From positions 27,422 to 91,421 of the forward strand of contig FLMG01002851.1 in NCBI GenBank assembly GCA_900088475.1: 64,000 nucleotides of DNA, written 5' to 3'. The stretch comes from Hyphochytrium catenoides (taxonomy: Eukaryota; Protista; Hyphochytriomycota). Made by a program: the position numbers and the translations under genes. Below, piece after piece: positions 6,501-47,891 of this stretch (positions are counted from its first letter, which is position 1; every line of letters starts with the position of its first letter). The notes below the pieces were generated by a model. The model was not told where the DNA came from, ran no database searches, and saw only the letters and a list, made by a program, of their open reading frames with translations.

Positions 6501-9500
6501 CTGTTCAGGATGCTAAGTGAAGATGAGGAGGTCATGGATCGGAACTGGTCCATTAACGCTTTCCACACGTACGCGGTCTACGCCTCCACGTGTCTGGGGC
6601 TCTTCGCACGGCACAAGCTGCTCTTTGCCTTTCAGATGTGCACACAAATCCTCCGGCAAGAGGGAAAATTGCTTCAGGAAGAGTACACTTTCCTTCTCAC
6701 GGGGGGAACCGTCTTGGATAGAAGCAATCAGCCACCTAATCCAGGTAGGAGGATCCCCTCCTTTCGACTTGCTTGTGTGTCCTTCTTTGTTTCTCTCTCT
6801 CGCTCCTTTCTCTCTCTCCATCTCTTTCTCTCTCTCTCTCCCCCTTTTAACCTTCTACGTCTCTTCAGTTTCCTCTCTCCAACCCCCTGCTGTGGCCGAC
6901 ACCTGTAGCACTGACTCTCATACTGCAGCTCCCGAGATCTTCCAGCCCAAGATGTGGGACAGCATCACCGAACTTTCAAGCTTGGCTGCCTTCTCAGGCC
7001 TTGCGGGGGCGATCGAGCAGAGCACCAAAGTGTGGAAAGAGTGGTACTCCAGCCCTCAGGTTAGTCCTTTTAGCTATCCCCGTCTCACGCTTCTCCAGTT
7101 CTTCTCAATCCATATCCTCCGAGCTCTTAGATTTTCTTCAGCTTAAGGGCACACGTAGGCAACTCTTCCCTTTTGTCCGGGATCTCCTTGTCGGTTTTAT
7201 TGCTCTGTGTGCGGTGCTCTTTGACTTACGAAGCCCTCTTGCTAACAAACTATGTGCGCTCGACTCTCATCGACAGCCGGAACAAACGCCGCTGCCTGCG
7301 GACTGGAACATGAAGCTTGGGGACTTCCAGAAGATGCTTCTGCTACGAGCACTGCGGCCAGATCGCCTCCTCTTTGCCGCTAATCGTTTTGTTGCTAGCG
7401 TCATGGGTGCACAGTATGCAGAGCCTCCCGCGCTCGATTTGGCGCAGGTTTTAGAGCAGTCTTCGCCGTCCATCCCGCTGGTCTTTGTGCTCTCTCCCGG
7501 AGTCGACCCTACCGCTCAGGTATGCTGCCGCGGGCAGTCGCTCCCCGGAGATTGACTTTATTCCCAGTAAATGAATGAAAATTGACGAGTATCGTTCCTC
7601 TTCGCTGGTTCTCTCTTGCCATAGGTCTCCCAGCTCGCCAGCGCCATGAACATGCCGCTGGAGGTCTGTGCCTTGGGACAGGGACAGGCACCAGTGGCCA
7701 CACGGCTGTTGAAGGAAGCAATGGCGGCAGGAAAATGGGTGTTCCTCTCCAACTGTCATCTGATGCTCAGCTGGATGCCTACGTTAGAAAAGATTGTCGA
7801 GGCCCTCAGCAGTCGCTCTTCTGCACAGCCCATCAGCCCGCAGTTCCGCCTGTGGTTGTCCAGCGCGCCCCACCCACGGTTCCCGATTTCCATTCTGCAG
7901 CGCGGGCTGAAGATAACAACGGAACCGCCACGAGGCTTGAAGTCCAACTTGCTGCAGATGTACAACTTGATATCGGAAGACCGCTTCAACGCCTGCAAAG
8001 AGGTGCATCTCTATCTGCTTACCATTGTCTACGCTACTCCCTGATTCATCTTCAAAGACTTTCAGCATCACAACCTCCGTGTGCTTTAGGCCGTACCTCA
8101 GACTTTGGCACAGTGTGTGCGTCGCTCGTTTGCTCTTTCTGCTCCCTCTCTCCTGCTGCTCTGTCTCTTTGTCTTTCTCAATCCGTATTCCCCATCTCCG
8201 CACTATCCGCTATTGCCTCCTCTCGTCCTTTTCTTTCCACGATTGTCTCTATTTTCTCTGATATCCCAAACTGTCATTCTGTCTCCTTCGTCTAGGGAAG
8301 CACCTATAAGAAGCTCATTTTCTCACTGGCATGGTTCCACTCCATCCTTCTCGAGCGGCGGAAGTTCAAGTCTTTAGGCTGGAACACAGCTTATGACTTC
8401 AACGCCTCAGACTTCTCCATATGCCACGACCTCATAGCAACCTTTTTGGAAGCCTATCCAGAGCACACCCCTTTTGAAGCGCTGCGTTATCTCATCGCCG
8501 AGGCGAACTATGGCGGCAGAGTCACCGACGATTGGGATAGGCGGCTGGTGGTTGTCTACGTAAATCAGTTCATTTGTACCGAGGCCGTGACAGAGCCACA
8601 GTACAAGCTTTCCTCCCTGTCAGAATACTTTATCCCGCATGACGGCTCGTTAGAGTCGTATAAGGAGTATATTCGAGGGTTGCCCATCACAGAGCAGCCG
8701 AGCGCTTTCGGACAACATCCTAACGCTGACATCTCCTCCCAAATTGAGGAGACTAACGAGCTGCTGGACACAATATTCTCCTTGCAGCCTTCAGTGGTTA
8801 CCGAAGCAGGAGAGACAAGAGAGACCAAGATACTGCGGATGGTGAAGAGTTTGGAAGAGCAGCTTTGTCAGACCATTGACACCTCTCCGGTCACAACCCC
8901 TGGTGCCGTGCGGAAAGAGTCAGAGCCGCTAAAGACGGTGCTCCTGCAGGAATGTGAGCGCTATAACAAGCTCCTCACCACGATGCGAAAGCACCTGCTG
9001 GACGTTGATAGGGCGGTACAGGGGCTCGTCGTTATCACAATGGAACTGGAGCAGGTGTGCGACGCTCTTCTAGGAGGCAAAGTGCCATCGGCTTGGTCAT
9101 TCTGCTATCCATCTATAAAACCTCTCGGATCTTGGATGAATGACCTTAAAGAGCGCTGTGAACAAATGGGAAAATGGGTACAGAAGGGAATGCCAAGCGT
9201 ATTCTGGCTCTCAGGCTTTACCTATCCGACAGGCTTTCTTACCGCGTTGCTACAGACGACTGCACGGAAGAATGGGCTTCCCATTGACACTCTTGGTTGG
9301 GACTTCCCCGTCCTGAAGGAAGATGTCTATGGGCTTCGGGATGGCCCTCCGGCTGCCGAGGGAGCGTATGTTCAAGGCCTCTACCTTGAGGGCGCTCGGT
9401 GGGACAGTGAGGTTTCTTGCCTGGCTGACGCTCTACCTATGGAGCTATACTGTCCCATGCCTGTCATCCACTTCAAGCCAATCGAGAACAAACGAAAGCC

Positions 9501-9663
9501 CGCAAAGGGCTATTATAGCTGTCCTATCTATATGTATCCCGTCCGATCTGGGACTAGAGAACGGCCTTCGTTCATGATAGCGGCCGACCTCCGGGCTGGA
9601 CAGATGGACGGGGACTTTTGGACCAAGCGAGGGGTGGCGCTGCTGCTCTCCCTGGGGAACTAA
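1..9663 (+). CDS. DNAH2: Axonemal dynein heavy chain, inner-arm I1/f beta type (DNAH2/DHC10-like); 5' part lies outside the window; 17 exons visible
   Basis: Spliced exons give the AAA3 end (DYEGWYDR...[22 protein letters not shown]), the AAA4 P-loop ([15 protein letters not shown]), stalk/MTBD ([22 protein letters not shown]), AAA5 ([17 protein letters not shown]), AAA6 ([30 protein letters not shown]) and a DNAH2-like C-terminus ([38 protein letters not shown]). GT-AG introns: 300-656, 1278-1458, 1834-1962, 2155-2435, 2665-2889, 3281-3649, 4108-4354, 4600-4797, 4966-5080, 5245-5552, 5797-5974, 6235-6508, 6745-6928, 7060-7276, 7520-7624, 8003-8295. Stop TAA at 9661-9663. Confidence 0.95.
471..545 (+). 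repeat. (CT)n-rich microsatellite in dynein intron 1; similar tracts at ~2196-2214, 2755-2820, 5400-5450, 6790-6840
   Basis: Directly visible ctctctctct runs inside the dynein introns. Confidence 0.9.
1303..1370 (+). repeat. (GA)n-rich microsatellite in dynein intron 2
   Basis: acagagagagacagagagagaaaagcagagagagagagagagagccagagagagagag, within intron 1278-1458. Confidence 0.9.
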
Positions 9664-29578: not shown

Positions 29579-31142
29579 ATGGCCGCTGAAGCTCGTGATA
29601 GCATTCATATCAGGAGAATATCGCGGCATGTTGAAGACGTAAGACCATAGTCTTGTTTTACAGATGAAGTATAGAACTGGGACTCACATTATGCGAGAAT
29701 GCTTACTCATAGGCCGGGAGCTTTTTGGCACAGTCAAAGAAAATGGTAACCTGGAGATTCGTTGTTGGTCCGCGCGACGAGCTCCACACGGTTATTCTGG
29801 AGCATTCGCTGCTCAAGGCCAAGAAAATTATCAAGCTCGATGGTTGGCAGATTCTACGGCAGGAGACTCCCACAATGGGTGATGAATGGAGGCACAAGTT
29901 CTTTATTAAAAATTGGGACTTCCCCTGCGAACTTGTTATCCGTACAGTCGCTGCAAGCGTACAAATGTCCGGGATGCGCTCTCCTTACGACTTAGAACTA
30001 AATGGCATCCAGTGGCATGAACTGCCGGAGCAAACAATATCCAGGCCAGGTATAGAGGATCCTTCTTAGACGTCAATTTGCCAGTGCCTTTCATATCTAA
30101 ACAGAGTCCGCAGGGGCGTCCTCTAGCGGGTCTCATGTATGGAGCAGCACCAACCTGCCCCGGCAAGTGCAGAAAGTAGAGGAGGCTGTCTCCGACGAGG
30201 AAGTTTGGGTTAAGTGGTTCTTTTGCTTTGGAGTAAGGAGTGAGGTTCACACGCTCATCCTAGAGCACAACGCTTCAGGGAGAAAGATCTTACGGCTAAA
30301 CAACAAGGTAGTGTACACCTAGTTCTCTGATTCTTACTACGATGATGTCTTACATATCTCTTACTCTCTCCCGACTGTTTCTGCTGCAGCTGGCGGCGCA
30401 GTATACACAGGATCACGAAGGAGACTGCGAGCTTGTCTGCTCCTTCCCTGGTCACTCCATGACAGTCCGTATCCTAGACACAGATCCTTACACCTATCAG
30501 TTAATCGTGGACGGAGTAGATTTTGATGCAATGATTCCAACTGACTTCACGCTAAAAGAAGGCTGGGAGAGCGTCAAGCCAGCCTCGGGGCCGAAGATGC
30601 ACTACAGGAATATGAAGACTGGAGAGACGAGCACAGATGTACCGACCCAGCCACGAGGAGATCCGCAAGTTCTCAGTGCGTCTAAAGAGACCAAGCTTGG
30701 AGAAGTTGGGGCTGGCGACACAGTGTTGACAAGCACTAAACGCTTAGGAGAACGAGAAGACATTTCTCATGAAGCAGTGGCTGACCTGTTAAACATATCT
30801 GCCACAAGCGCCAACTCTGCCGCACAGCCTTTTTCAGGACCAAGACCGTTGACGGAAGATATTCCTCCTTCTCATGCTGAAGTGCGGGATATTCCTACTG
30901 CCGAAAGGAAGGCCGCAGCGACAGCAGATCTTCTAGACCTGTCTGCGGAGGAAACATCAATAGTTGCGGCGGTCCAATCTTTTGATCCATTTTCTACTTC
31001 CACCGCGGAGCAGGCAAGCCATGGACCCCTTAGTGACCTGATGGAGGTTCAACATCAACAGCCAATGGCAATGGCTGCGCGACCGGTAGCATGGGCTGTC
31101 AGTGATCCATTCCGAGAGCTCTCGCAGTCTGACGGTCGATAG
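29579..31142 (+). CDS. Protein with two FAIM-like beta-sandwich domains, a WW domain and a disordered tail with DLL/DPF motifs
   Basis: Spliced: MAAEARDS..SKKMVTWRFVVG..HTVILEHSLLKAKKIIKLDG..YDLELNG (repeat 1); VWVKWFFCFG..HTLILEHNASGRKILRLNNK..YQLIVDG (repeat 2); LKEGWESVKPASGPKMHYRNMKTGETSTDVP (WW-like); tail ADLLNIS, ADLLDLS, FDPF, SDPF. Confidence 0.75.
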
Positions 31143-31190: not shown

Positions 31191-34100
31191 TTATGGCACA
31201 TCGGAGCTCTGCAACTTAGCTGGTGAGAGCAAAGATGTGGGACTAATCAGCGAACTGACGGACTGGCTGACTGCCAGGGGAGTGAGGGACGCAGCAGGTG
31301 CGCCACATTTCTCTCTGAAGTCTGGATGCTTGGAGAAGATCTTTTCGTAGAAGTCTCGTGTCCTTCTTAGGAACGGGTCAGCGCTCTGCCATACCTTCTC
31401 TATGCCTAGCACGCTATCTAGCGCTCTTATCGCTCCTACATCGCGATGAGCGGAGGGAAGGTCCAACCGTCGAAAAAGAAAAACAAGATCGAACGACGAC
31501 CAGGGAGCCCACAGCATAGACCATGGCCGTGCAATCAAGACGTTGGAGTTAGTATTATTCAGCGTTGTTGGCCTTAGGCTTGACCTAGAGGGCCCTTACC
31601 TTGCGCATAGCCTAGCACTTCTTGTGAAGACACACGGGAGAGTGTACCCTGCCGGATCGGAGAGGAAGCTTAGGCAGCACGTCCTATATGCGAGCATACC
31701 CCATACCAGTATTTATAGCACCCATGCCTTCTGAAATCCACTATTGGCCTCCCTCTGTCTCCACATGGTGACCTCACTCATCTTCACAATGGTAACTCTC
31801 GCTCTGGCTCAAGTGTAAGCTTTCGTACCTGAACTGTCCACTCACTCAGCATCCTAGCGACTTGTTCGTGCACATGTAACGGAACGTTGGCGCCGCTTTT
31901 GTCTCCTTCTGCTGAGGTGGTCGCTCCTACTAGTGCTTCATACATAAAGTTATCCATGGCCAATTGTCGTAGGGATGCTGTGAGACGCTCTTTCCTCGAC
32001 AGTACGGCGGTCACTAGCGACTGGCAAAAGGAGTCATCGACCAAAAGCTCCTCCTTTGTCCAAAGGTTCTGGAAGAGGAGCTTACAAGGAAAGACAGCGC
32101 CACGCTTGACCATAGTGATTGCATAATACATCATCACCTTAAATGGGTGCAGGAACGAGAGATGAGGAGGATAAATTAATGGTTGAGGCCAAGGCAGAAA
32201 AGGTAGATAAGCCCATAATGATCCTACTTTGCCAAGGGCGGACTCATAGTTCATGAGCTCTTTCAGAACGGGATCTAAGGGTGGAAGCGCTTCGATGCCT
32301 ATTTTGTGGGGAGGGGACACGAAGAGGTGAGGTGATGATTAAGAAGGGCGGAGACCTGTTAATCACTATAAACATTTACCTTTCGAAGCCACCAAGCTTC
32401 CCGAGACCATACGAATCTCCACCGTGAAATGGGCCATCAATGGACAGAAGACGCGGCCCACTGCTGGATCGGCTTCGCGCACCACATACTCCTACAGCAC
32501 ACGTTCACAGCCATCAGGGTCACAACGTAAGGAGAGGAGTGGGGCATCAGCGCCACGCGTCAACGTTCAAGCTTACCCTAAGCTTCTTCATTCTCAATAT
32601 GGACTCTGGGCTTCCAAGCGTTAAGAGCTGCACAATGCCTGGCATCAAGGGATGGTCCTGGCACCGAGCAGGCAGTTAGGTTCAAGAGAAAGTGTGCAGT
32701 CGATTAGCTGGTTGAGTTCACGATAGCCTCTTGTAGACATTGGGCACCTTCGGCAGCTGGCTTTTCGCAATGGCTTCATTCACTACACGGACTAGACTCC
32801 TAATGAGCAGGTTCTGGACGAAAGGATTGCCCAGGAGGAAACAGACATCAAGAAGTGCTGGCATGTAGACCTCGCGAGGCAGAACAGGCTGACCGCTCTG
32901 GACAATTGAGAGGAGAGCGGCGAGTAAATAAACGTTATCGCACTGCCACTTAGTGATGGCAAAAGGCGGATTGGAGAGCTCACTCTACCCACATGATTCG
33001 GGCTTGCCAGCGTCCTTCTTCTCTTGGGCCTACTGCCTGGTTGCCGCTGCGGATTCAGCATCAATCGAGCCGCTTCAAACACCTTCTCCGCCTTCGACTG
33101 GAGTTTCTGTGAAAAGGACAGAGACGTACATGGCAGGGTCAGACACAAGGCGAACCGCACGCGACGATAGTTGACCCCTGTCATCATCAAATGGAGATTC
33201 CGTGCAAGCCCTGCGGAGCCGTTTGGCCGTTTCTCTCTACCCATGATACCCGCTGTATCTCTTCAGCCCATAAAGTGGAACTGTACCTTAGCATGCTTGA
33301 AGTATATAGTGTCAGGTTCATTGAAGAGGAGACAGTTATTGATCATCAACTGGAAGTCAGATTCAAGGTCTTCTACCGACTTATACTGCTCAAACGTAGA
33401 GGGCAAGACAGGTGCGAAGGCGTTCAGCGTGATCATGTGTTAGGTTAATGTTCCCGGATGTCAATAGCAAGTCTTGGCTAATTTTACCTCTTCCCCTTCA
33501 GCCTTTCGCTGCATAGTAGAGAGATCCATGGGTTCGGAGATAATCTCCCGGTAACCTGGCACATCGTCTGGAACGGGTAGTGCAAATATATTGTGGGTAT
33601 CATACTTGCTTAAGCTGGATAACACATACTGCAAGACCTATGCCGCGTGGAAAGACGAAGCAACGTTAGACATCACAGTTTGACACGCCTGGCACTAACA
33701 CCCTATTCAAGCAAGCTTTAAACACTTTGGTGTCAGCGCAGGTGCGCACAGGTCCAAAATCATCAGGTAAGGTAGAGCTTACTACCAGGAGGAAACGCCG
33801 CCATCACCATTCTCTAACCACTCTAGCTGCTCTAGGAGTGGGGCTAGATTCATGCATCGCTTTAAAACCTCAGAGCTTTCGAATGCTCCTTTTGAGCCTG
33901 GCAGGCAGTAAGTGGCTCACCTCAGGAAGGGGTATGGGTGCGTAGTCAGCTTCATCGTCATAGTCACCAAGCATACTTATATCCCCTGAAGAATGAGCTT
34001 AGCCTTCAGGTAACATCTCCCGTCGCCTTTTGCTCTTACCTAGTCGGTACTCTGCGATGATCTTCTGGATTTCGGTAAGCCTGGAGCTGTCCAGGTGGGG

Positions 34101-35953
34101 ATACTTTAGCGCTGCATCCAGCGCCCACGCCAAGCGACTAATAGAGTCCTCCTTTAGGGCCTATGCAGAGACAGAGTTGAGGCCATAGAGTTCAATTATA
34201 TATAGATACGATAGTGAGCGGAAGCATAGGGGTAGAAAGAGGAACCTTTACCAGACTTACCGATGGTTGAACGTCCTTATGTGAGAGGATGATATCCATG
34301 CGAAGTGCCAAGAGAAGCGGGTTCTGTGTCTCTTCGTATTTCTCAGCGATGAGCGTTGAGAAAGAGTTGAATAGGGTCTACGAAACATAAAGGACGGAAG
34401 TAACCGGGAAAAGCAGAGGTGGAAGAGACCTTTAATACAATGTACCGCAGATTACGGCGTCTTCCAGCTCCTCTAACCTTGGAAGTCCCAAGAGCTGTGA
34501 TAATCTTGCGTAAGCTCTGGTCGCCGTGCCGTCTAAGAAAAGATGGGGTCGAGAGCCATCGAGAAATAGAAGTCGGAGATTGAGTCTAAAAGAAGCATAT
34601 CACCTTTCTTGCCCCATTGTAACTATTTCACTCTTCAATGCGTTGACAAGTTATCACTTTGACCAATGTACCATCATCTTCCCATATCTCCACTCTCTTG
34701 AATCGTCTTTCTCGATCAGGTGGACAACTCCGCTACGTTATTACTCCTCCTCGATCTTACCTGGTCTCTGCCGAGATGGTATGGTCTCCGGTCATGTCCA
34801 GGGCATACGATGCCGTGTGTCTGTTTTTTACATAGTCTTCTATATAGCCTCCCACCGCTCCGAAGAACACTTTCTCATCCAGCTCCCAGACTCTGCTTTT
34901 CACATGTAGAGGTAACTCCCTCATGATATCAGGCTTGATAGCTAAAGAGCGAAGGAAAGGCTCTGGAATATGCGACCCAGGGCGTGAGATAAGAGCAATA
35001 GGGACAGGGCGGAGCTCTGGGAAGTCAATAAAGGGAAAGGTCTTGGCAAGAAGGATGCCAAGCTTTTCAGCCTCCATGGTCCTGATGCGGTCTATGTATA
35101 AGAACGAGCGTGGAGAGCAATAGTTAGACTTGTTTGTGTGCTGCTTTGCTGGAGTACAACCTGGCCCTTTAACCCTCTTCTTCCCCTCTTATCCAGTCTC
35201 TCCTCAAGCTTTGGTCTTTACTCTTTAGCTCCCTCACTAACACTGTCCCCTTTATGTGAATGTTGGACCTCACCAAGTAAGTGCCGGCGCAGCTCTGTGA
35301 CAATGGAAAGATAAAGGTCTGATCGCGCCATGTTTAGCTGTTCAAGCAGCGTAATGGCCGAGTCCACGCTTCCTAGTTTGAGAGCGTTCTGCTGCTGGAA
35401 CTCGGTGATCGTCATCGCTGGGTCAGCGGATTTGCTGTAAGGGAAAATGGGAAGGGAAGGAGAGAGCGGATAAGTCTAAGAGAGCGGCGATAGAAGACAG
35501 AGTACACGCGACAGAAAAAAACCAGGGAGTTAGTAGGAAGGAGACAATAGTCCAAGCTGTCATTCCTAGAGACGGCGAGACTAGAGCTATTCTCTCAGCT
35601 CCAAGCGCTTATAGGGAAGTCACATGGCAAGAGTATGGCGCGTTCTCAGCAAGGTAATCAGAGTAATCAAGCCTTCAGCAACCCAAGAGCACGGAAGGGA
35701 GAGACTCACGAAAGAGGGCCAGCAAGAGAGAGGATAAAGAAGGGAGAGAGCAGTAAGGCGAAAGAAGGACCGCACACAGAGGAAGAGAGTAGAGAGAGAG
35801 AGAGACAAGGGACAACGAGAAGAGAAATAAAAGACAACTTATATCCACGTAACAGGACCTTAGGGCATCGCGCAGGACTGCTCCTCCAAGCGAGCCAATC
35901 AAGGCCACCGGAGAGTGACCGGGATTCATCTCTCCGCCTCCCACCGTCGACAT
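31191..35953 (-). CDS. NELFB: Negative elongation factor B (NELF-B/COBRA1) homolog with an internal bromodomain, multi-exon
   Basis: COBRA1-like segments in order: LRDALSKSADPAMTITEFQQQN..SAITLLEQL..LRRHLL; LLAKTFPFIDFPELRPV..ELPLHVKSRVWELDEKVF; SRLAWALDAALK; LLDVCFLLGNPFVQNLL..LPK..IVQLLTLG. Bromodomain exons at 33488-33637 and 33287-33385. ATG at 35953, stop at 31191-31193. Confidence 0.88.
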
Positions 35954-37155: not shown

Positions 37156-40100
37156 TTAATAAAAGTGCGCTCGAATGACTCTGTCAGAGGAGCTTCGGCT
37201 CCTTGCGATCTCTTTCACCGCAAGATGCCCGGCCCAAAGCTGCCAAACCGCCTTCAGTCGCTCAGCATTTAGAAAGAGAGGTCGTCTACGCCTCAAGCCA
37301 ACGTCTTCCTCCCCAAAGGCGTCAACATAGAACGAGCTAAAGTACGATGCCTTTGAGCCGCGAATCAATAGCGTTGAGCACTTGAGAATCAAAAAGAACA
37401 TGCCTGCACGGATCCAATAAAGAAAGGTGGCCAGAGGGAAGCCAGTGTTAGAACAAGTGTGACAGGAACGGCGGAGACATTAAGAGTTCTCTCGGTGAAG
37501 CGATTGTTCTGTTGACTAGCAGCTTACACAGATAGAAGGAGGAAGAAGCGGAACAATGAGAAAGGAAAAATAAAATGCGCTGAGGCAAAGAATAAGGCAA
37601 CAGGTGCAAAGATCTCAATCTAACGCCTCACCCGCTGTTATCGTACCTGTAGCATTCCTACAGTGCAGGGAATGGAGAGTGCACTCGCCAACGTTATCCA
37701 CCTTTCTCCCAGCGCAGAGGAAGGCCCCGCAGAGGAGACAAATGGCTGGATCTTCAATTCTTGTCTCCCCACAGGAGGAGCATGCGGAGCTCACCACAGC
37801 GGCATATAGCTCTGTGTAGGAAGGGGCGAGGTGGCAGAAGTTGAGGCGATAGCTATTGATGAAGAGCAGTGCGCCAGATGGGGTGAGAGCCACACGAAGC
37901 GGCGGGGACGGAAGGAAGAGCCTGTGTCGCCTCTCCACCACACTGTAGCCATCAATTTCCATGGGCTCTAATGCCTTTTGTTCTTGTGCACCAACCGCTT
38001 CGTACTCCGCTTGAGCCGCATCCAGGCTGTACGATGGGCTCTTGCGCTTTCGGACTTCGCCTTAAGAGCAATAGGCAATCATAAGCACGAGGTAAGGAGA
38101 GCATTAGCCGAACGTAATGAGGCGCCAGGGGACTGCGATAAAACAAGACCACCAGCTGAGGGCCTTGCGCTTGTGTTCCTTTATAAGGGAAAAAGTAGAA
38201 AGTGTCCTCACCTCGGCCAAGAAGCTTTACCCGTGCGTCCTCAAGCTTCCCACTAAGAAATGCGTTGCGCGCTTCTGCTGGTACGACGGCACTCATATCC
38301 GTGCTGAAGTCGACGATCTGCCCAGCTCCACTACCTCCTGTGCCCCACTGCTCCGCCCAGGTCTACAGGTCAACAAAGGAGAAAGGTAGAAGCCATTAGG
38401 GGTTGCAGAGAGCTCTATTAACGGCACCTCTTACCTTTAGCAAGTGTAAATTCTCATGGCTACTCGCGAGGTCTTTGGGCGCAGTGACCCCCAGGTTCTT
38501 GCACATTTCAGCGCAGGAAATTGAAAGCGGGAAGGTTCGCTCGCCAGGCATCGTGTTTCGGAGCTCTTCTAATGAGAACAGGACCCGCTGGAAAAGTGAG
38601 ATTTGACGGAGAAAGGAGCTCCAACCTAAGGCCACGAACTCTACCAGCGAGTTGCCTGCCAGTATTCCCAGGGTTAGTTACTGTCGACAACGAGCAGGTC
38701 TTCTCGGAACGACCTGGGAGGAACAGACAAGAAGAAGCAAGTGCCCAGCGAGCAAGTTTTACCTCCGAGGGCATCTGCAGGCACCACGACATTCGCTTCG
38801 GCAGCTAGAATCTGGCGCAACGCAAGTAGGTCGTCTGCATGCAAAAAATCTCTGTCCTCCAAGGCTACCATTATACTATGCACAGTGTCTCGCGCTGATG
38901 ATGGGTTTGACTCCTGAATAGGAGTCATAGATGCTAAAAGATGAAAGCCCAAACTCGCCAACGCCAAAGTCCGACAGCTCATTTGAACATTCCGCCTGGT
39001 AAGCGGCAGAAGGGATGTGACGGCCGTCAGGAGATAGAGCCCATCCGACTGATAGAGAGACTGACACAGGGCTAAAGGGAAGCCATCACGAAGGGCATCC
39101 GACCAGCTTGCTAAAGGTTTACGGAGACCCAGCACACCCATCAAAGGCTGTACCAATGTCTTCGGAAGCTCTTCTGACGATAGAAGTAGTTTTGGAAGAA
39201 GGCGGATAGAAGAAAACAGACGTGCAAGCTCCTCCGCTTCATTCCTGAACCATGGCTCTAGCTCCCCATGTAAACAGTCTGCAGCGTGACACGGGTATAT
39301 AAACCGCAAAAATATAAGCGTTAGCAGCGATCAAGAAACGAACCCAAGGCCAGGGGACACTGAGGGTCCACAAGCGAAAAGATGTCTCACCTTGAAGCTG
39401 CGAATGCCCTTCCTTCTCCTTCATGATGGCCGTTACATTGGCGCGAGCGCTCCCCATCGCCTCACTGCATCGTAAAGCACCAGCAAAGGCGGCCCAAGCC
39501 GTGTGGAACTTTTCAAAATTTTCGACCTGTAGGCTCTTGCGCTTAGGGTTGCGCAAATCCTCCTCTCTACATTCATCAGAAGAGAGATATGTGAGACGAC
39601 GTAAAAGAGAAAAGCCGTGGTTCATAAGTCGACACCAAGTGAGTCTCTCCTCATCAAAACAAGTGTCTTCAGCAAAACGACAGCAGGCTCACCTAAGTCC
39701 CTCGCCGACGTCCACAAACTGCTCCGTCAAAAGTAAGAAGCGTAGATGAAGCTGCGCCTCAAGCGCCTCATTACCGCCAGCAGCTAACTTATAGTCATCC
39801 CCCTGATGCGTCATCAGCAAATGTGGGAGGTCTGCAACGAACCACTCGCATGTCGAGTCCGCACTCGTCGCTACGCTGTCAGTGCTCATGTCCACTCCGT
39901 CCAAGGTGCTAAGGTGGGGCACCAGAATATTGCTGATGGTCTTGCAAAGCGGACAGAGAAACTCTGCCCACTCGATTTGAACAGCGGAGCGTCCTTCATA
40001 GTGTGCACCTGTAGAGACAAGGAAGAGATACTAATATTAGCTTAAGCTGCAATTGGTGACGAACATGCATACATACCAGAAGACGACTTCTCTATCAGCG

Positions 40101-45911: not shown

Positions 45912-47891
45912 ATGAGGGGTAGACAGCTGAGAAGTGAAGTGCAGAGCCTTTCGAGAACTGGGCAAGAGATGACCAACCAACCTTTATCGGGAACCCGTGC
46001 TGGAGAGCGAACCCCACTTATGGCAGCCGAGGACGAAGAAAATGTTGACGCAATGGTGTTTCTTCATTACCTGGACACAGATGAGACCGTCACTGAGCGC
46101 AGGAAGTCCTACCGGAGCCCAGCTAACTTTAACTTTAGTCTCATGCCCACGCATGACATGGTCTTCCCTCCTCTAGACACATCTCTGTACGTCGGTGAGC
46201 TCATCATTCTTGCCCTTCTCCTATTTCTTAATGCTTTGGACTGGCCGCTCACTCTGCCAACACTATGGCCCTATATATCGCGCCGCTTCAACGACTCCTC
46301 GCCTTACGCACTATACGGTGTACTACTTGCATTGTTTGATGCCTTGGCGCTTGTCGGGGGACCGGTATCGTCCTGGTTGGTCAGGAGATGGAACCTGAGC
46401 TACTCCAGATCATTGGCAGCTCTGTTTGGGCTAGCCGCTTTGGGAAACCTCTTGGTTTTCTCTGCTAGCGTGATAAGCGCGTTTTGTGGGTCTGCAGATG
46501 CGAATACATCCGCACTGTCTCCTTCACCTTCCTCTCCTACATTTACCCCTCTGAGCTTATCAGACCCTAAAGTTCCCATTGTCATGGTGCTCCTCGGACG
46601 TGCCCTGTCAGGTTTCGCCTCTGGTTCTATTGTGGGCCTTGGGCACGAGTATATTTCCTCCATCTCAACCCATCAAAATCGGCCCTTACTGCTAAGCAAG
46701 TTTGCCGCGATCAGGGTGCTTGCTATGAGCTTCGGTCCACTCTTCGCAGCCCTCTTGACTGCAGTTGACCTGAAGCTGGGACCCTTCCAGTTGGACTGGG
46801 TCTCTCTCCCATTCGTCCTCCTGTCCTTGATCATGGCCGCGGGTATTTTCTTTTCCATCCGCATCCGGCAACCGTCATTTGATCATCTCCTAGACGGTGG
46901 AAGGGACTCCTCTGTCCACATGGAGACTATTGTGGAAGAGCCTGGGCAGGCCTTGCCACCCGTCAGTCCATCCTGGACTCAAGCGGGCCGTCTACTGCTG
47001 GAACCCCCCGTGCTGGTCTGTCTGCTGGTCATTCTGGCCACGAACATGACCATTAGCGTGATAGACACTATTATTACGCCCTTTATGGACGGAGCCTTCG
47101 ACTTTACTTCACTTGAGACCAGCATACTAATCTCTACTGGGCTTATCACCCTCCTTCTCGGCTCGACCGTAGTGTCTTCGTTGGCGCTGTATGTCCACGA
47201 TCGCTATGTCTTACTAGGTAGCCTGTTGATCCTAGTCGTAACCGTCCTGGTGTTGAACTACGGGGTCCTTTCTTGGGACTCCTCTGTGCTGGAGTTCACA
47301 ATCAGTGTCCTTCTGGTTAATTTCTTTCTTCGGATGGTTCGGACCCCAAATCGAGGCGTGCTAAGCAAGATTCTCGCCACCTATACTGTCTCTGAGTCGA
47401 GGATGCTGACTAACTTGCTAATGTCGGTGGACTGTTTGGCTGCAATTGCTGGCAATCTTGTGGTCGGTTTCTCTCTGCACACGCCGAGTAACAAAGACGG
47501 TAGCAAGCCCGTTGAGGAACCACTTCAGGGTGCATTGGAAGGCTACGCTGCAACCTATCCTCTTGGCATTCTTAGTGTGATCATCGCAATCGCACTAGTC
47601 ATACTCTTGACTTCTCTGAAACGGATGGCAAGGGTACACACTCAGTTCTTAAGAACTGTGCAAAGACCATTGGACGAGTATGGTCTCACAGAGCGGATTC
47701 TGAAGATCTGTATACCGCCAGGTCTCACCCCTGTGCAGCTTCGCGGCCGTTTTCTGACACCGAAGCAAGAGGAAAACCTCATTCGCTTTGGGACTCCAAC
47801 ACCTTACATTCTCGTAAAGCGGCTCAGAAGGGACAGACTGTCTAGTGGACGCAGCGAGCACACAAGTCATGAGGACTTTACGAGAAGATAG
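45912..47891 (+). CDS. Major facilitator superfamily transporter, MFSD8/CLN7-like, intronless
   Basis: 659-aa ORF with ~12 hydrophobic segments, LTLPTLWPYI, LLGRALSGFASG, HEYISSIS..NR and SFGPLFAA. The N-terminal ERTPLM resembles an acidic dileucine-type lysosomal sorting signal. Confidence 0.85.
   Translation: MRGRQLRSEVQSLSRTGQEMTNQPLSGTRAGERTPLMAAEDEENVDAMVFLHYLDTDETVTERRKSYRSPANFNFSLMPTHDMVFPPLDTSLYVGELIILALLLFLNALDWPLTLPTLWPYISRRFNDSSPYALYGVLLALFDALALVGGPVSSWLVRRWNLSYSRSLAALFGLAALGNLLVFSASVISAFCGSADANTSALSPSPSSPTFTPLSLSDPKVPIVMVLLGRALSGFASGSIVGLGHEYISSISTHQNRPLLLSKFAAIRVLAMSFGPLFAALLTAVDLKLGPFQLDWVSLPFVLLSLIMAAGIFFSIRIRQPSFDHLLDGGRDSSVHMETIVEEPGQALPPVSPSWTQAGRLLLEPPVLVCLLVILATNMTISVIDTIITPFMDGAFDFTSLETSILISTGLITLLLGSTVVSSLALYVHDRYVLLGSLLILVVTVLVLNYGVLSWDSSVLEFTISVLLVNFFLRMVRTPNRGVLSKILATYTVSESRMLTNLLMSVDCLAAIAGNLVVGFSLHTPSNKDGSKPVEEPLQGALEGYAATYPLGILSVIIAIALVILLTSLKRMARVHTQFLRTVQRPLDEYGLTERILKICIPPGLTPVQLRGRFLTPKQEENLIRFGTPTPYILVKRLRRDRLSSGRSEHTSHEDFTRR

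Follow-up and report, generated by a model that had tools for sequence, protein, structure and literature searches.

The window, a 64,000-nucleotide stretch of Hyphochytrium catenoides DNA, contains on its minus strand, at positions 35415–31784, a gene that in all likelihood encodes the H. catenoides orthologue of NELF-B (COBRA1). The predicted product is of the stramenopile type, an all-helical scaffold of 656 aa that carries a module of ~155 residues inserted in a surface loop. We modeled the gene manually on the genomic sequence as 14 exons whose compatible phases yield one open reading frame. All 13 introns have GT-AG borders, are 54–283 nt long and are phase-compatible. The longest, intron 6 (283 nt), lies directly upstream of the exons that encode a bromodomain. 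The exons are as follows.

35274–35415, minus strand: exon 1, residues 1–48; start codon ATG at 35415; N-terminal NELF-B helices; donor ctt g/gtgagg, phase 1; covered by the NELF-B HMM from residue 2
34761–35091, minus strand: exon 2, residues 48–158; best-conserved NELF-B/COBRA1 segment, with matches to Pfam COBRA1 and human NELF-B
34478–34532, minus strand: exon 3, residues 158–176; ttcttag/A is the sole acceptor compatible with the phase-2 donor of the preceding exon
34261–34377, minus strand: exon 4, residues 177–215; inside the match to the bromodomain-free NELF-B HMM
34040–34160, minus strand: exon 5, residues 216–256; last NELF-B helices before the insert; RLAWALDAAL...; ISRLAWALDAAL...EYRL
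33921–33985, minus strand: exon 6, residues 256–277; acidic linker DYDDEADY and PIPLPE, leading into the bromodomain
33488–33637, minus strand: exon 7, residues 278–327; bromodomain helix Z, ZA loop and helix A; VLQYVL...AEGEE; Tyr306 (PGY) and PMDL
33287–33385, minus strand: exon 8, residues 328–360; bromodomain helix B, BC loop and start of helix C; YKSVED...FKHAK; Asn349 (NCLLFN)
32984–33106, minus strand: exon 9, residues 361–401; starts with KLQSKAEKVF at 33106; remainder of helix C and the basic patch RPKRRRT (33031–33011)
32748–32897, minus strand: exon 10, residues 402–451; NELF-B resumes; MPALLDVCFLLGNPFVQNLL...SQLPK; contains LLDVCFLLGNPFVQNLL; weak Pfam COBRA1 match
32577–32657, minus strand: exon 11, residues 452–478; within the NELF-B HMM match
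32380–32491, minus strand: exon 12, residues 479–516; within the NELF-B HMM match
32228–32298, minus strand: exon 13, residues 516–539; manual model
31784–32137, minus strand: exon 14, residues 540–656 and TGA stop; C-terminal NELF-B helices, with the HMM match extending to residue 643

The peptides quoted in the sequence-only reading were found in place on the minus strand: those of the bromodomain are translated from exons 7, 8 and 9 as claimed, and the flanking ones from exons 5 and 10. Reading through exon 5 beyond its donor leads to a stop. Exons 7, 8 and 9 are each phase 0-0, such that an isoform skipping the bromodomain would keep the frame. Specifically, a join of exon 6 to exon 10 keeps the frame, and a direct join of exon 5 (donor phase 1) to exon 10 (phase 0) is impossible. 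Exon 6 also contains an in-frame ATG (MLGDYDDE...). Judged from the genomic sequence, it is very likely that these exons belong to a single gene with a NELF-B/bromodomain architecture.

NELF-B flanks and the inserted module

Pfam profiles were applied exon by exon, the spliced 656-aa product was compared using local HMMs, and the fold was taken from an orthologue, P0016. An HMM built from 17 bromodomain-free NELF-B proteins only matched the spliced product over residues 2–261 (HMM 26–290, 212 bits) and again over residues 415–643 (HMM 283–494, 94 bits). Both halves are matched and the break falls at ~283–290 of the HMM, which shows that the two flanks directly follow one another in the NELF-B family. 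Among the single exons, exon 2 matched Pfam COBRA1 (PF06209) over profile positions 2–78 of 348 at E = 5.7e-5, a marginal score of 22.7 bits for a cut-off of 22, and exon 10 gave a weak match over positions 192–227 of 348 (E = 0.14). Exon 2 further matched residues 91–185 of human NELF-B in the PDB (E = 9e-6) and had 146 relatives at E ≤ 1e-3 in a search of 1.84 billion proteins. Searches of the PDB using exon 5, exon 10 or the P. ramorum N-part alone yielded no match. The clade profile A1 aligned to human NELF-B in three stretches (E = 2e-22), and the Albugo segment equivalent to exon 10 aligned to the human protein from residue 293. Mapped using profile A1 and the Albugo C-part, the N part extends to ~288–291 of human NELF-B and the C part starts at 293. 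The proposal that COBRA1 segments lie on either side of the bromodomain was thus borne out by the bromodomain-free HMM for both halves, and by the Pfam and PDB matches of exon 2.

The insert spans ~155 residues (about 260–414) and comprises the acidic linker, a complete bromodomain (exons 7–9) and a basic KRRR patch. Two matches to the Pfam Bromodomain profile (PF00439; 84 positions) together cover the whole domain: positions 4–49 in exon 7 (E = 9.5e-9) and positions 51–83 in exon 8 (E = 3.8e-8). The ZA-loop Tyr306 (VPGY) is encoded at 33553–33551 and the BC-loop Asn349 at 33322–33320, and the PMDL motif is present. With this coverage and with the codons located, the bromodomain proved to be as intact as had been claimed, including the ZA-loop Tyr, PMDL and the acetyl-lysine-binding Asn. 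About 240 residues of NELF-B fold lie C-terminal to the bromodomain, which makes it an internal domain.

These features recur in the relatives. Both pocket residues are kept throughout the aligned clade except in P0169, an annotation with a gap, and all members with intact gene models likewise keep PMDL and the FAxPV shelf. Relatives carry an equivalent acidic stretch followed by PPP, as well as a K/R patch (KKRRK) at the same place, in which K485 and R486 are identical across every sequence of alignment A1. The corresponding patch of the H. catenoides protein, RPKRRRT, is probably a nuclear localisation signal.

The best sequence matches to the stramenopile bromodomain were those of BRPF1 (peregrin) and BRD1 (BRPF2), followed by BRD9 and BRD7 (family IV), at ~94–102 bits. 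The stramenopile domain shares with these bromodomains the two residues, Tyr and Asn, of the acetyl-lysine pocket. The settings differ: the bromodomains of BRPF1, BRD1, BRD9 and BRD7 occur in HAT-scaffold (MOZ/HBO1) or SWI/SNF proteins near PHD/PWWP domains, whereas the stramenopile one lies inside a helical repeat protein.

The AF2 model, made of the orthologue P0016 and not of the H. catenoides protein, had a pLDDT of 82.8 and a pTM of 0.74. It comprises an N half (residues 17–304), a disordered stretch (310–349) that is the counterpart of the exon 6 acidic linker, the bromodomain (~350–470) and a C half (519–880). As modeled, the bromodomain is a left-handed four-helix bundle. Using Foldseek, the top five matches to P0016 were human NELF-B chains (probability 1.0, TM 0.57–0.65, ~853 aligned columns), followed by crystal structures of the BRPF1/BRD1 bromodomains (rmsd 1.1 Å, 36% identity, TM 0.86–0.90). 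Family IV structures overall matched at rmsd 1.1–1.3 Å and 35–37% identity. Human NELF-B (PDB 6GML, 8JJ6 and 9J0N chain V) thus shares with P0016 an all-helical fold over both halves (TM 0.64), and its sequence similarity to the stramenopile proteins likewise lies in an N part and a C part, with an overall identity of ~13%. Where the stramenopile protein has its ~155-residue module, the human protein has a short loop at ~289–293. Indeed, the reference NELF-B proteins, including the human PDB chains, have only a short loop at this place, in agreement with the claim that animal NELF-B lacks a bromodomain.

Conservation of the insertion in stramenopiles

The bromodomain is inserted at the same site in >20 relatives, including proteins of Phytophthora, Pythium, Lagenidium, Plasmopara, Peronosclerospora and Albugo. 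The break in the canonical HMM falls at ~283–290 in the H. catenoides protein, at 277/281 in most relatives, including all of the oomycetes named here, and at 276–283 in P0016, P0006 and P0040. In P0016, P0006 and the P. ramorum protein, a single uninterrupted open reading frame spans both NELF-B halves and the bromodomain; the fusion therefore does not depend on splicing. The P. ramorum gene (1232 aa), the only oomycete gene checked, is intronless, as are those of P0016 and P0006 (824–898 aa). By comparison, the H. catenoides protein is small (656 aa) and its gene has 13 introns, whereas the oomycete proteins are 950–1270 aa long and contain long extra regions.

To place these proteins, a tree of 78 sequences, 20 of them bromodomain-bearing, was calculated using FastTree and 489 NELF-B columns without the bromodomain. 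All but one of the bromodomain-bearing proteins (19 of 20) formed one clade, with an SH-like support of 0.996 and the H. catenoides protein as its first branch. The remaining protein, P0017, fell just outside the clade, paired with a bromodomain-free sequence at a weak support of 0.37. Independent insertions in separate lineages are unlikely for the core clade, given the common site and the single clade. P0017 and P0131 are divergent or have no detectable C half, and the verdict on independent insertions applies to the core clade.

Among the stramenopile proteins, identity was 43–52% in the bromodomain versus 23–37% in the NELF-B halves, and 23 of the 56 invariant columns of alignment A1 lie inside the bromodomain. 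By these measures, no other part of stramenopile NELF-B is as well conserved as the bromodomain.

This architecture is already on record. According to the supplementary methods and Table S1 of Chivu et al. (bioRxiv 10.1101/2023.02.19.529146), every stramenopile NELF-B sequence that they examined has a bromodomain, termed C-terminal, and many stramenopile NELF-C/D proteins have WW domains. Their set included labyrinthulomycetes (Aurantiochytrium, Hondaea, Thraustochytrium and Mucochytrium), Vaucheria, an opalozoan and oomycetes. These NELF-B proteins have the same Pfam pair, PF06209 and PF00439, at the same site and in the same clade as the H. catenoides protein. Although the text of Chivu et al. 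describes the bromodomain as C-terminal, it is internal here, and their own Pfam table lists COBRA1 matches after the bromodomain. In addition, the public record of the Plasmopara halstedii protein is automatically annotated as 'putative bromodomain, cofactor of BRCA1'. Our search of main-text literature on NELF-B/COBRA1 and a bromodomain in stramenopiles or oomycetes returned nothing relevant; the statement was found in the supplements of Chivu et al.

Of the overall reading made from the sequence, the part describing one NELF-B gene with a bromodomain inside its helical fold stood. The implied novelty did not, as the architecture is conserved across stramenopiles, automatically annotated in public records and stated in the above supplement. 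With the architecture on record, the H. catenoides gene adds no new kind. What it adds is a compact, intron-rich member of the subfamily, a correction that places the bromodomain in an internal loop, always at the same site, instead of at the C terminus, and an experimental handle in the Asn349/Tyr306 pocket.

Possible roles of the NELF-B bromodomain

Bromodomains have both ends at one pole and the pocket at the opposite pole. With this geometry, flexible linkers would hold the inserted domain out from the surface of NELF-B. So placed, it would bind acetylated lysines, and we somewhat favor the view that it does. The likeliest targets would be the histone H3/H4 tails of promoter-proximal nucleosomes, and binding to them would couple NELF occupancy to chromatin acetylation. 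The basic patch probably serves nuclear import.

A less probable alternative is that the bromodomain reads no acetylated histones. It would then act as a protein–protein module, binding for example an acetylated non-histone partner or a ligand that is not acetylated, or serve mainly to carry the linker and the nuclear localisation signal. Certain bromodomains are known to bind proteins other than histones or to have only a weak affinity for acetyl-lysine, and the conserved basic patch adjoining the domain suggests that the insert supplies nuclear import. However, all intact members, despite their deep divergence within the stramenopiles, retain the pocket Tyr and Asn along with PMDL and the FAxPV shelf, and the closest solved relatives are the histone-binding bromodomains of BRPF1 and BRD1 (36% identity, rmsd 1.1 Å). 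Acetyl-lysine binding remains the reading that we prefer.

With respect to pausing, Chivu et al. (bioRxiv 10.1101/2023.02.19.529146) describe NELF-B and NELF-C/D as the widely distributed core of NELF, and NELF-A and NELF-E as more recently derived; they report higher pausing indices in species that have only the B and C/D core than in species that lack NELF. In the literature, NELF-C/D homologues are described from oomycetes and other stramenopiles. The stramenopile protein would remain a core NELF subunit paired with NELF-C/D, which bears N-terminal WW domains in many stramenopiles. The downstream edge of the animal paused complex is formed by the NELF-B/E lobe, which lies close to the +1 nucleosome (PMC11881899). 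The proposal in the sequence-only reading that NELF itself may read acetylated +1 nucleosomes is plausible. That acetyl-lysine binding by the NELF-B bromodomain modulates Pol II pausing is a tentative suggestion. More speculative still is the idea that the stramenopile core NELF is a self-contained chromatin- and CTD-reading pausing module. Its bromodomain would engage acetylated H3/H4 tails of the +1 nucleosome and the WW domains of NELF-C/D would engage Pro-rich or phospho-Ser-Pro motifs, such as those of the Pol II CTD. Pausing strength would be set directly by promoter acetylation, and the module would substitute for the missing NELF-A/E.

It is also conceivable, at a lower probability than the absence of histone reading considered above, that the stramenopile protein kept the NELF-B fold, left pausing and is now the scaffold of another chromatin-reader complex. 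The reported recency of NELF-A and NELF-E fits such a departure, as do the low identity of the NELF-B halves among stramenopiles (just 23–37%) and the long extra regions of the oomycete versions (950–1270 aa). Nevertheless, NELF-C/D homologues exist in these organisms, species with B and C/D only show raised pausing indices, and both halves of the fold, which in animals contact C/D and E, are retained. A core NELF subunit is thus the preferred assignment.

Finally, it is very improbable that the bromodomain exons are not constitutive in H. catenoides NELF-B, being skipped or belonging to a nested transcript that starts at the exon 6 ATG: the phase 0-0 exons 7–9, that in-frame ATG and the position of the longest intron would permit it, but three relatives encode the N half, bromodomain and C half in one open reading frame, the insertion site is identical in >20 proteins, the introns around the module are short (54–283 nt) like those in the rest of the gene, no part of the family is more conserved than the bromodomain and, for skipping, exon 5 is incompatible with exon 10. 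We therefore return to the reading of the bromodomain as an integral part of NELF-B.

For the proposed coupling of acetyl-lysine reading to pausing, BRD4/P-TEFb provides a functional analogy only: both link acetyl-lysine reading, putative in NELF-B, to a Pol II pausing step. In animals, the reader BRD4 recruits a pause-release kinase, whereas in stramenopile NELF-B the putative reader is built into a pause-stabilising factor. BRD4 is a BET protein and the NELF-B bromodomain is of family IV, and homology is limited to the bromodomain fold. Accounts of NELF usually describe an animal pausing factor that has no chromatin-reading modules. The NELF-B-borne putative reader is kept across a whole lineage of a eukaryotic supergroup, in oomycetes, labyrinthulomycetes, at least one ochrophyte and H. 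catenoides. Its carriers include pathogens of crops and animals (Phytophthora, Plasmopara and Pythium insidiosum), in which transcription control is poorly understood. Sequence conservation is higher in the bromodomain than in its scaffold, pointing to a link between histone acetylation and early elongation that has been under selection outside animals. If true, the self-contained pausing module considered above would be a reader-in-the-brake arrangement, with a logic opposite to that of BRD4/P-TEFb pause release in animals.

A NELF-B gene containing a bromodomain

The NELF-B (COBRA1) gene was assembled from the sequence as 14 exons on the minus strand, running from an ATG at 35415 to a stop at 31784. 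Its 13 introns are all GT-AG, range from 54 to 283 nt and are compatible in every phase, and the spliced product is a single 656-aa ORF. A sequence-only reading had placed a complete bromodomain between two COBRA1 segments, inside the NELF-B fold, and had quoted three peptides from it. Each of the three is an exact translation, and the claimed flanking exons were recovered as exons 5 and 10.

Features of the NELF-B-bromodomain gene
34160-34040 (-): exon 5, flanking the bromodomain module on the NELF-B N side
33637-33488 (-): exon 7, exact translation of the first quoted peptide
33553-33551 (-): codon of the ZA-loop Tyr (VPGY), conserved in the clade
33385-33287 (-): exon 8, exact translation of the second quoted peptide
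33322-33320 (-): codon of the BC-loop Asn (NCLLFN), conserved in the clade
33106-32984 (-): exon 9, with the third quoted peptide, an exact translation, at its start
33031-33011 (-): basic patch RPKRRRT, after helix C, equivalent to KKRRK of relatives
32897-32748 (-): exon 10, flanking the module on the NELF-B C side

Within exons 6-9 (33985-32984, -), exons 7, 8 and 9 each have phase 0-0, and the start of bromodomain helix Z coincides exactly with intron 6.

Exon 2 alone scored 22.7 bits against Pfam COBRA1 (cut-off 22), matched residues 91-185 of human NELF-B in the PDB (E 9e-6) and retrieved 146 relatives from 1.84 billion representative proteins. A canonical HMM of 573 positions was built locally from 17 full-length bromodomain-free relatives. 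In the spliced window protein, this profile matched residues 2-261 (N half; HMM 26-290, 212 bits) and residues 415-643 (C half; HMM 283-494, 94 bits). Thus, the two halves abut in the family profile, leaving about 155 residues (260-414) as an addition; where relatives have no bromodomain, only about 5-10 residues separate these halves. Alignment of the clade profile to human NELF-B extended to about residue 288-291, and the C part of the Albugo protein aligned to it from residue 293, at GQEQVLGDLSMILCDPF. The module therefore stands in place of the human loop at about 289-293. Both the COBRA1 identity of the flanks and the insertion of the bromodomain within the fold were thereby upheld.

Anatomy and conservation of the insert

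Exon 6 supplies an acidic linker (DYDDEADY) followed by the lead-in PIPLPE; in relatives, EEEE...PPP occupies this position. The bromodomain is encoded by exons 7-9. Of the 84 positions of the Pfam Bromodomain profile, 4-49 matched exon 7 (E 9.5e-9) and 51-83 matched exon 8 (E 3.8e-8). The domain is therefore complete, as had been claimed, with Tyr, PMDL and Asn present. The FAxPV shelf, ZA-loop Tyr, PMDL and BC-loop Asn are kept in every clade member except the gapped Phytophthora cactorum protein, P0169. In the latter, annotated as 'Cofactor of BRCA1', the BC loop and helix C fall in an alignment gap that is probably a gene-model error and not a real loss.

Two residues of the basic patch, K485 and R486, are invariant in the alignment of the bromodomain-bearing clade, and the patch probably acts as a nuclear localisation signal. 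The bromodomain shares 43-52% identity with relatives, compared with 23-37% for the NELF-B halves, and 23 of the 56 invariant columns lie inside the bromodomain's 83 residues. Judged by these alignments, conservation within the protein is highest in the bromodomain.

The fusion in relatives and its predicted structure

A bromodomain lies between two NELF-B halves in 8 of the 146 representatives, and in more than 20 proteins in all. These come from Phytophthora (P. ramorum, P. palmivora, P. citrophthora, P. lilii and P. cactorum), other oomycetes (Pythium insidiosum, Lagenidium giganteum, Plasmopara halstedii, Peronosclerospora sorghi, Nothophytophthora and Albugo laibachii) and metagenomic organisms. 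The canonical HMM is interrupted at 277/281 in most of these proteins, those of all named oomycetes among them; in relatives P0016, P0006 and P0040 the break is within a few positions of this. The genes of P0016, P0006 and P. ramorum are single uninterrupted ORFs of exactly protein length plus stop, so the architecture there is independent of splicing prediction. These comparisons argue strongly for a real fusion in the window gene. An in-frame isoform without exons 7-9 is possible in this organism. As intronless relatives have the same insert, the exon 6-9 introns are uninformative on how the module arrived.

In a tree based on NELF-B columns only (78 sequences, 489 columns), 19 of 20 bromodomain-bearing sequences formed one clade (support 0.996), with the window's protein as its first branch. 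The remaining sequence, P0017, was weakly placed outside. Adjoining clades consist of bromodomain-free proteins, including green-algal, glaucophyte and amoebozoan ones. In a further relative, P0131 (1086 aa, on a 7.8 kb Logan contig), two bromodomains in tandem (396-474, 598-666) come after a NELF-B N half, and no C half was detected by the canonical HMM. Either the insert was duplicated in a divergent lineage, or the gene call is truncated or misjoined.

The fold was evaluated using the orthologue P0016, predicted with a 73-sequence alignment (mean pLDDT 82.8, pTM 0.74).

Regions of the P0016 model
Residues 17-304: N half, confident, helical
Residues 310-349: linker, disordered
About 350-470: bromodomain, confident four-helix, the last helix extending into the basic region
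Residues 519-880: C half, confident, helical

The best Foldseek matches were human NELF-B chains (8W8E_V, 8JJ6_A, 9J0N_V, 9J0O_V and 8UHA_V), aligned over about 853 columns covering both halves (probability 1.0, TM 0.57-0.65). Next came BRPF1/BRD1 bromodomains (rmsd 1.1-1.3 Å, 35-37% identity); sequence comparison likewise placed family IV (BRD1, BRPF1, BRD9 and BRD7) nearest among solved bromodomains.

A UBR1/PRT6-type N-recognin gene (37618-38061 (-) to about 44800 (-); PRT6_C E 2.3e-12) lies directly upstream in the window and shares the strand of the NELF-B gene. On its metagenome scaffold, P0016 directly neighbours a zf-UBR/PRT6_C gene in the opposite relative orientation, and the shared adjacency weakly suggests microsynteny. 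Downstream, on the other strand, ORFs at 29725-30069 (+) and 30167-31142 (+) encode a FAIM1 (Fas apoptotic inhibitory molecule) domain (E 1.2e-4) and a second FAIM1-like repeat, then a WW-like segment and low-complexity tail. The window also holds an ORF for a dynein heavy chain C-terminal region (8446-9663 (+); Dynein_C E 5e-98) and a 659-aa ORF for an MFS/OATP-like transporter (45912-47891 (+)).

Prior record and possible function

Main-text literature searches returned no relevant match for the NELF-B and bromodomain combination. It is reported in the supplementary material of Chivu et al., 'Evolution of promoter-proximal pausing enabled a new layer of transcription control' (bioRxiv 10.1101/2023.02.19.529146), where every stramenopile NELF-B examined is said to bear a bromodomain, described there as C-terminal. 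Public annotations record it as well, for instance 'putative bromodomain, cofactor of BRCA1' in Plasmopara halstedii. The architecture is therefore already known, and the novelty implied by the sequence-only reading did not stand; the window gene is a further member of a kind recorded but uncharacterised. The candidate set of Chivu et al. holds 14 stramenopile NELF-B (1 ochrophyte, 6 Sagenista, 1 opalozoan and 6 oomycetes). Their Pfam output gives COBRA1, bromodomain, COBRA1 in Mucochytrium, bromodomain then COBRA1 in Hondaea and Phytophthora infestans, and COBRA1 then bromodomain in Thraustochytrium and Vaucheria litorea. The same supplement reports N-terminal WW domains on many stramenopile NELF-C/D, and its Table S1 restates both features. 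NELF-C/D of P. sojae, Albugo candida and Saprolegnia parasitica begins with WW-domain-like repeats (…W…YYYN…W.KP) (bioRxiv 10.1101/2023.02.19.529146); thus, both stramenopile core NELF subunits bear an extra reader-type module. In that study, NELF-B and NELF-C/D are the widely distributed eukaryotic core, NELF-A and NELF-E arose later, and pausing indices are higher in core-only species than in species without NELF.

To this record, the present analysis adds three points: the bromodomain is inserted internally, at a single fixed loop; conserved acidic and basic elements lie on either side of it; and no other part of the protein is as strongly constrained. One gene, two folds, the insertion site and pocket-residue conservation are established, and the structural interpretation, NELF-B with an inserted bromodomain, is supported. 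Both bromodomain termini lie at the pole opposite the acetyl-lysine pocket, an arrangement favourable for placing the domain in a loop of a host protein, pocket facing outward. By entry titles, the ligands in solved BRPF1 bromodomain complexes are H2AK5ac, H4K12ac, H4K5acK8ac and H3K14ac peptides. Acetyl-lysine binding by the NELF-B bromodomain is predicted as somewhat probable; a putative effect of such binding on pausing is tentative and rather doubtful. Acetylation reading by NELF is a plausible functional interpretation. Stramenopile NELF-B would stay a core NELF subunit, its tethered bromodomain would bind acetylated histone tails of promoter-proximal nucleosomes, and NELF occupancy may in this way be coupled to acetylation.
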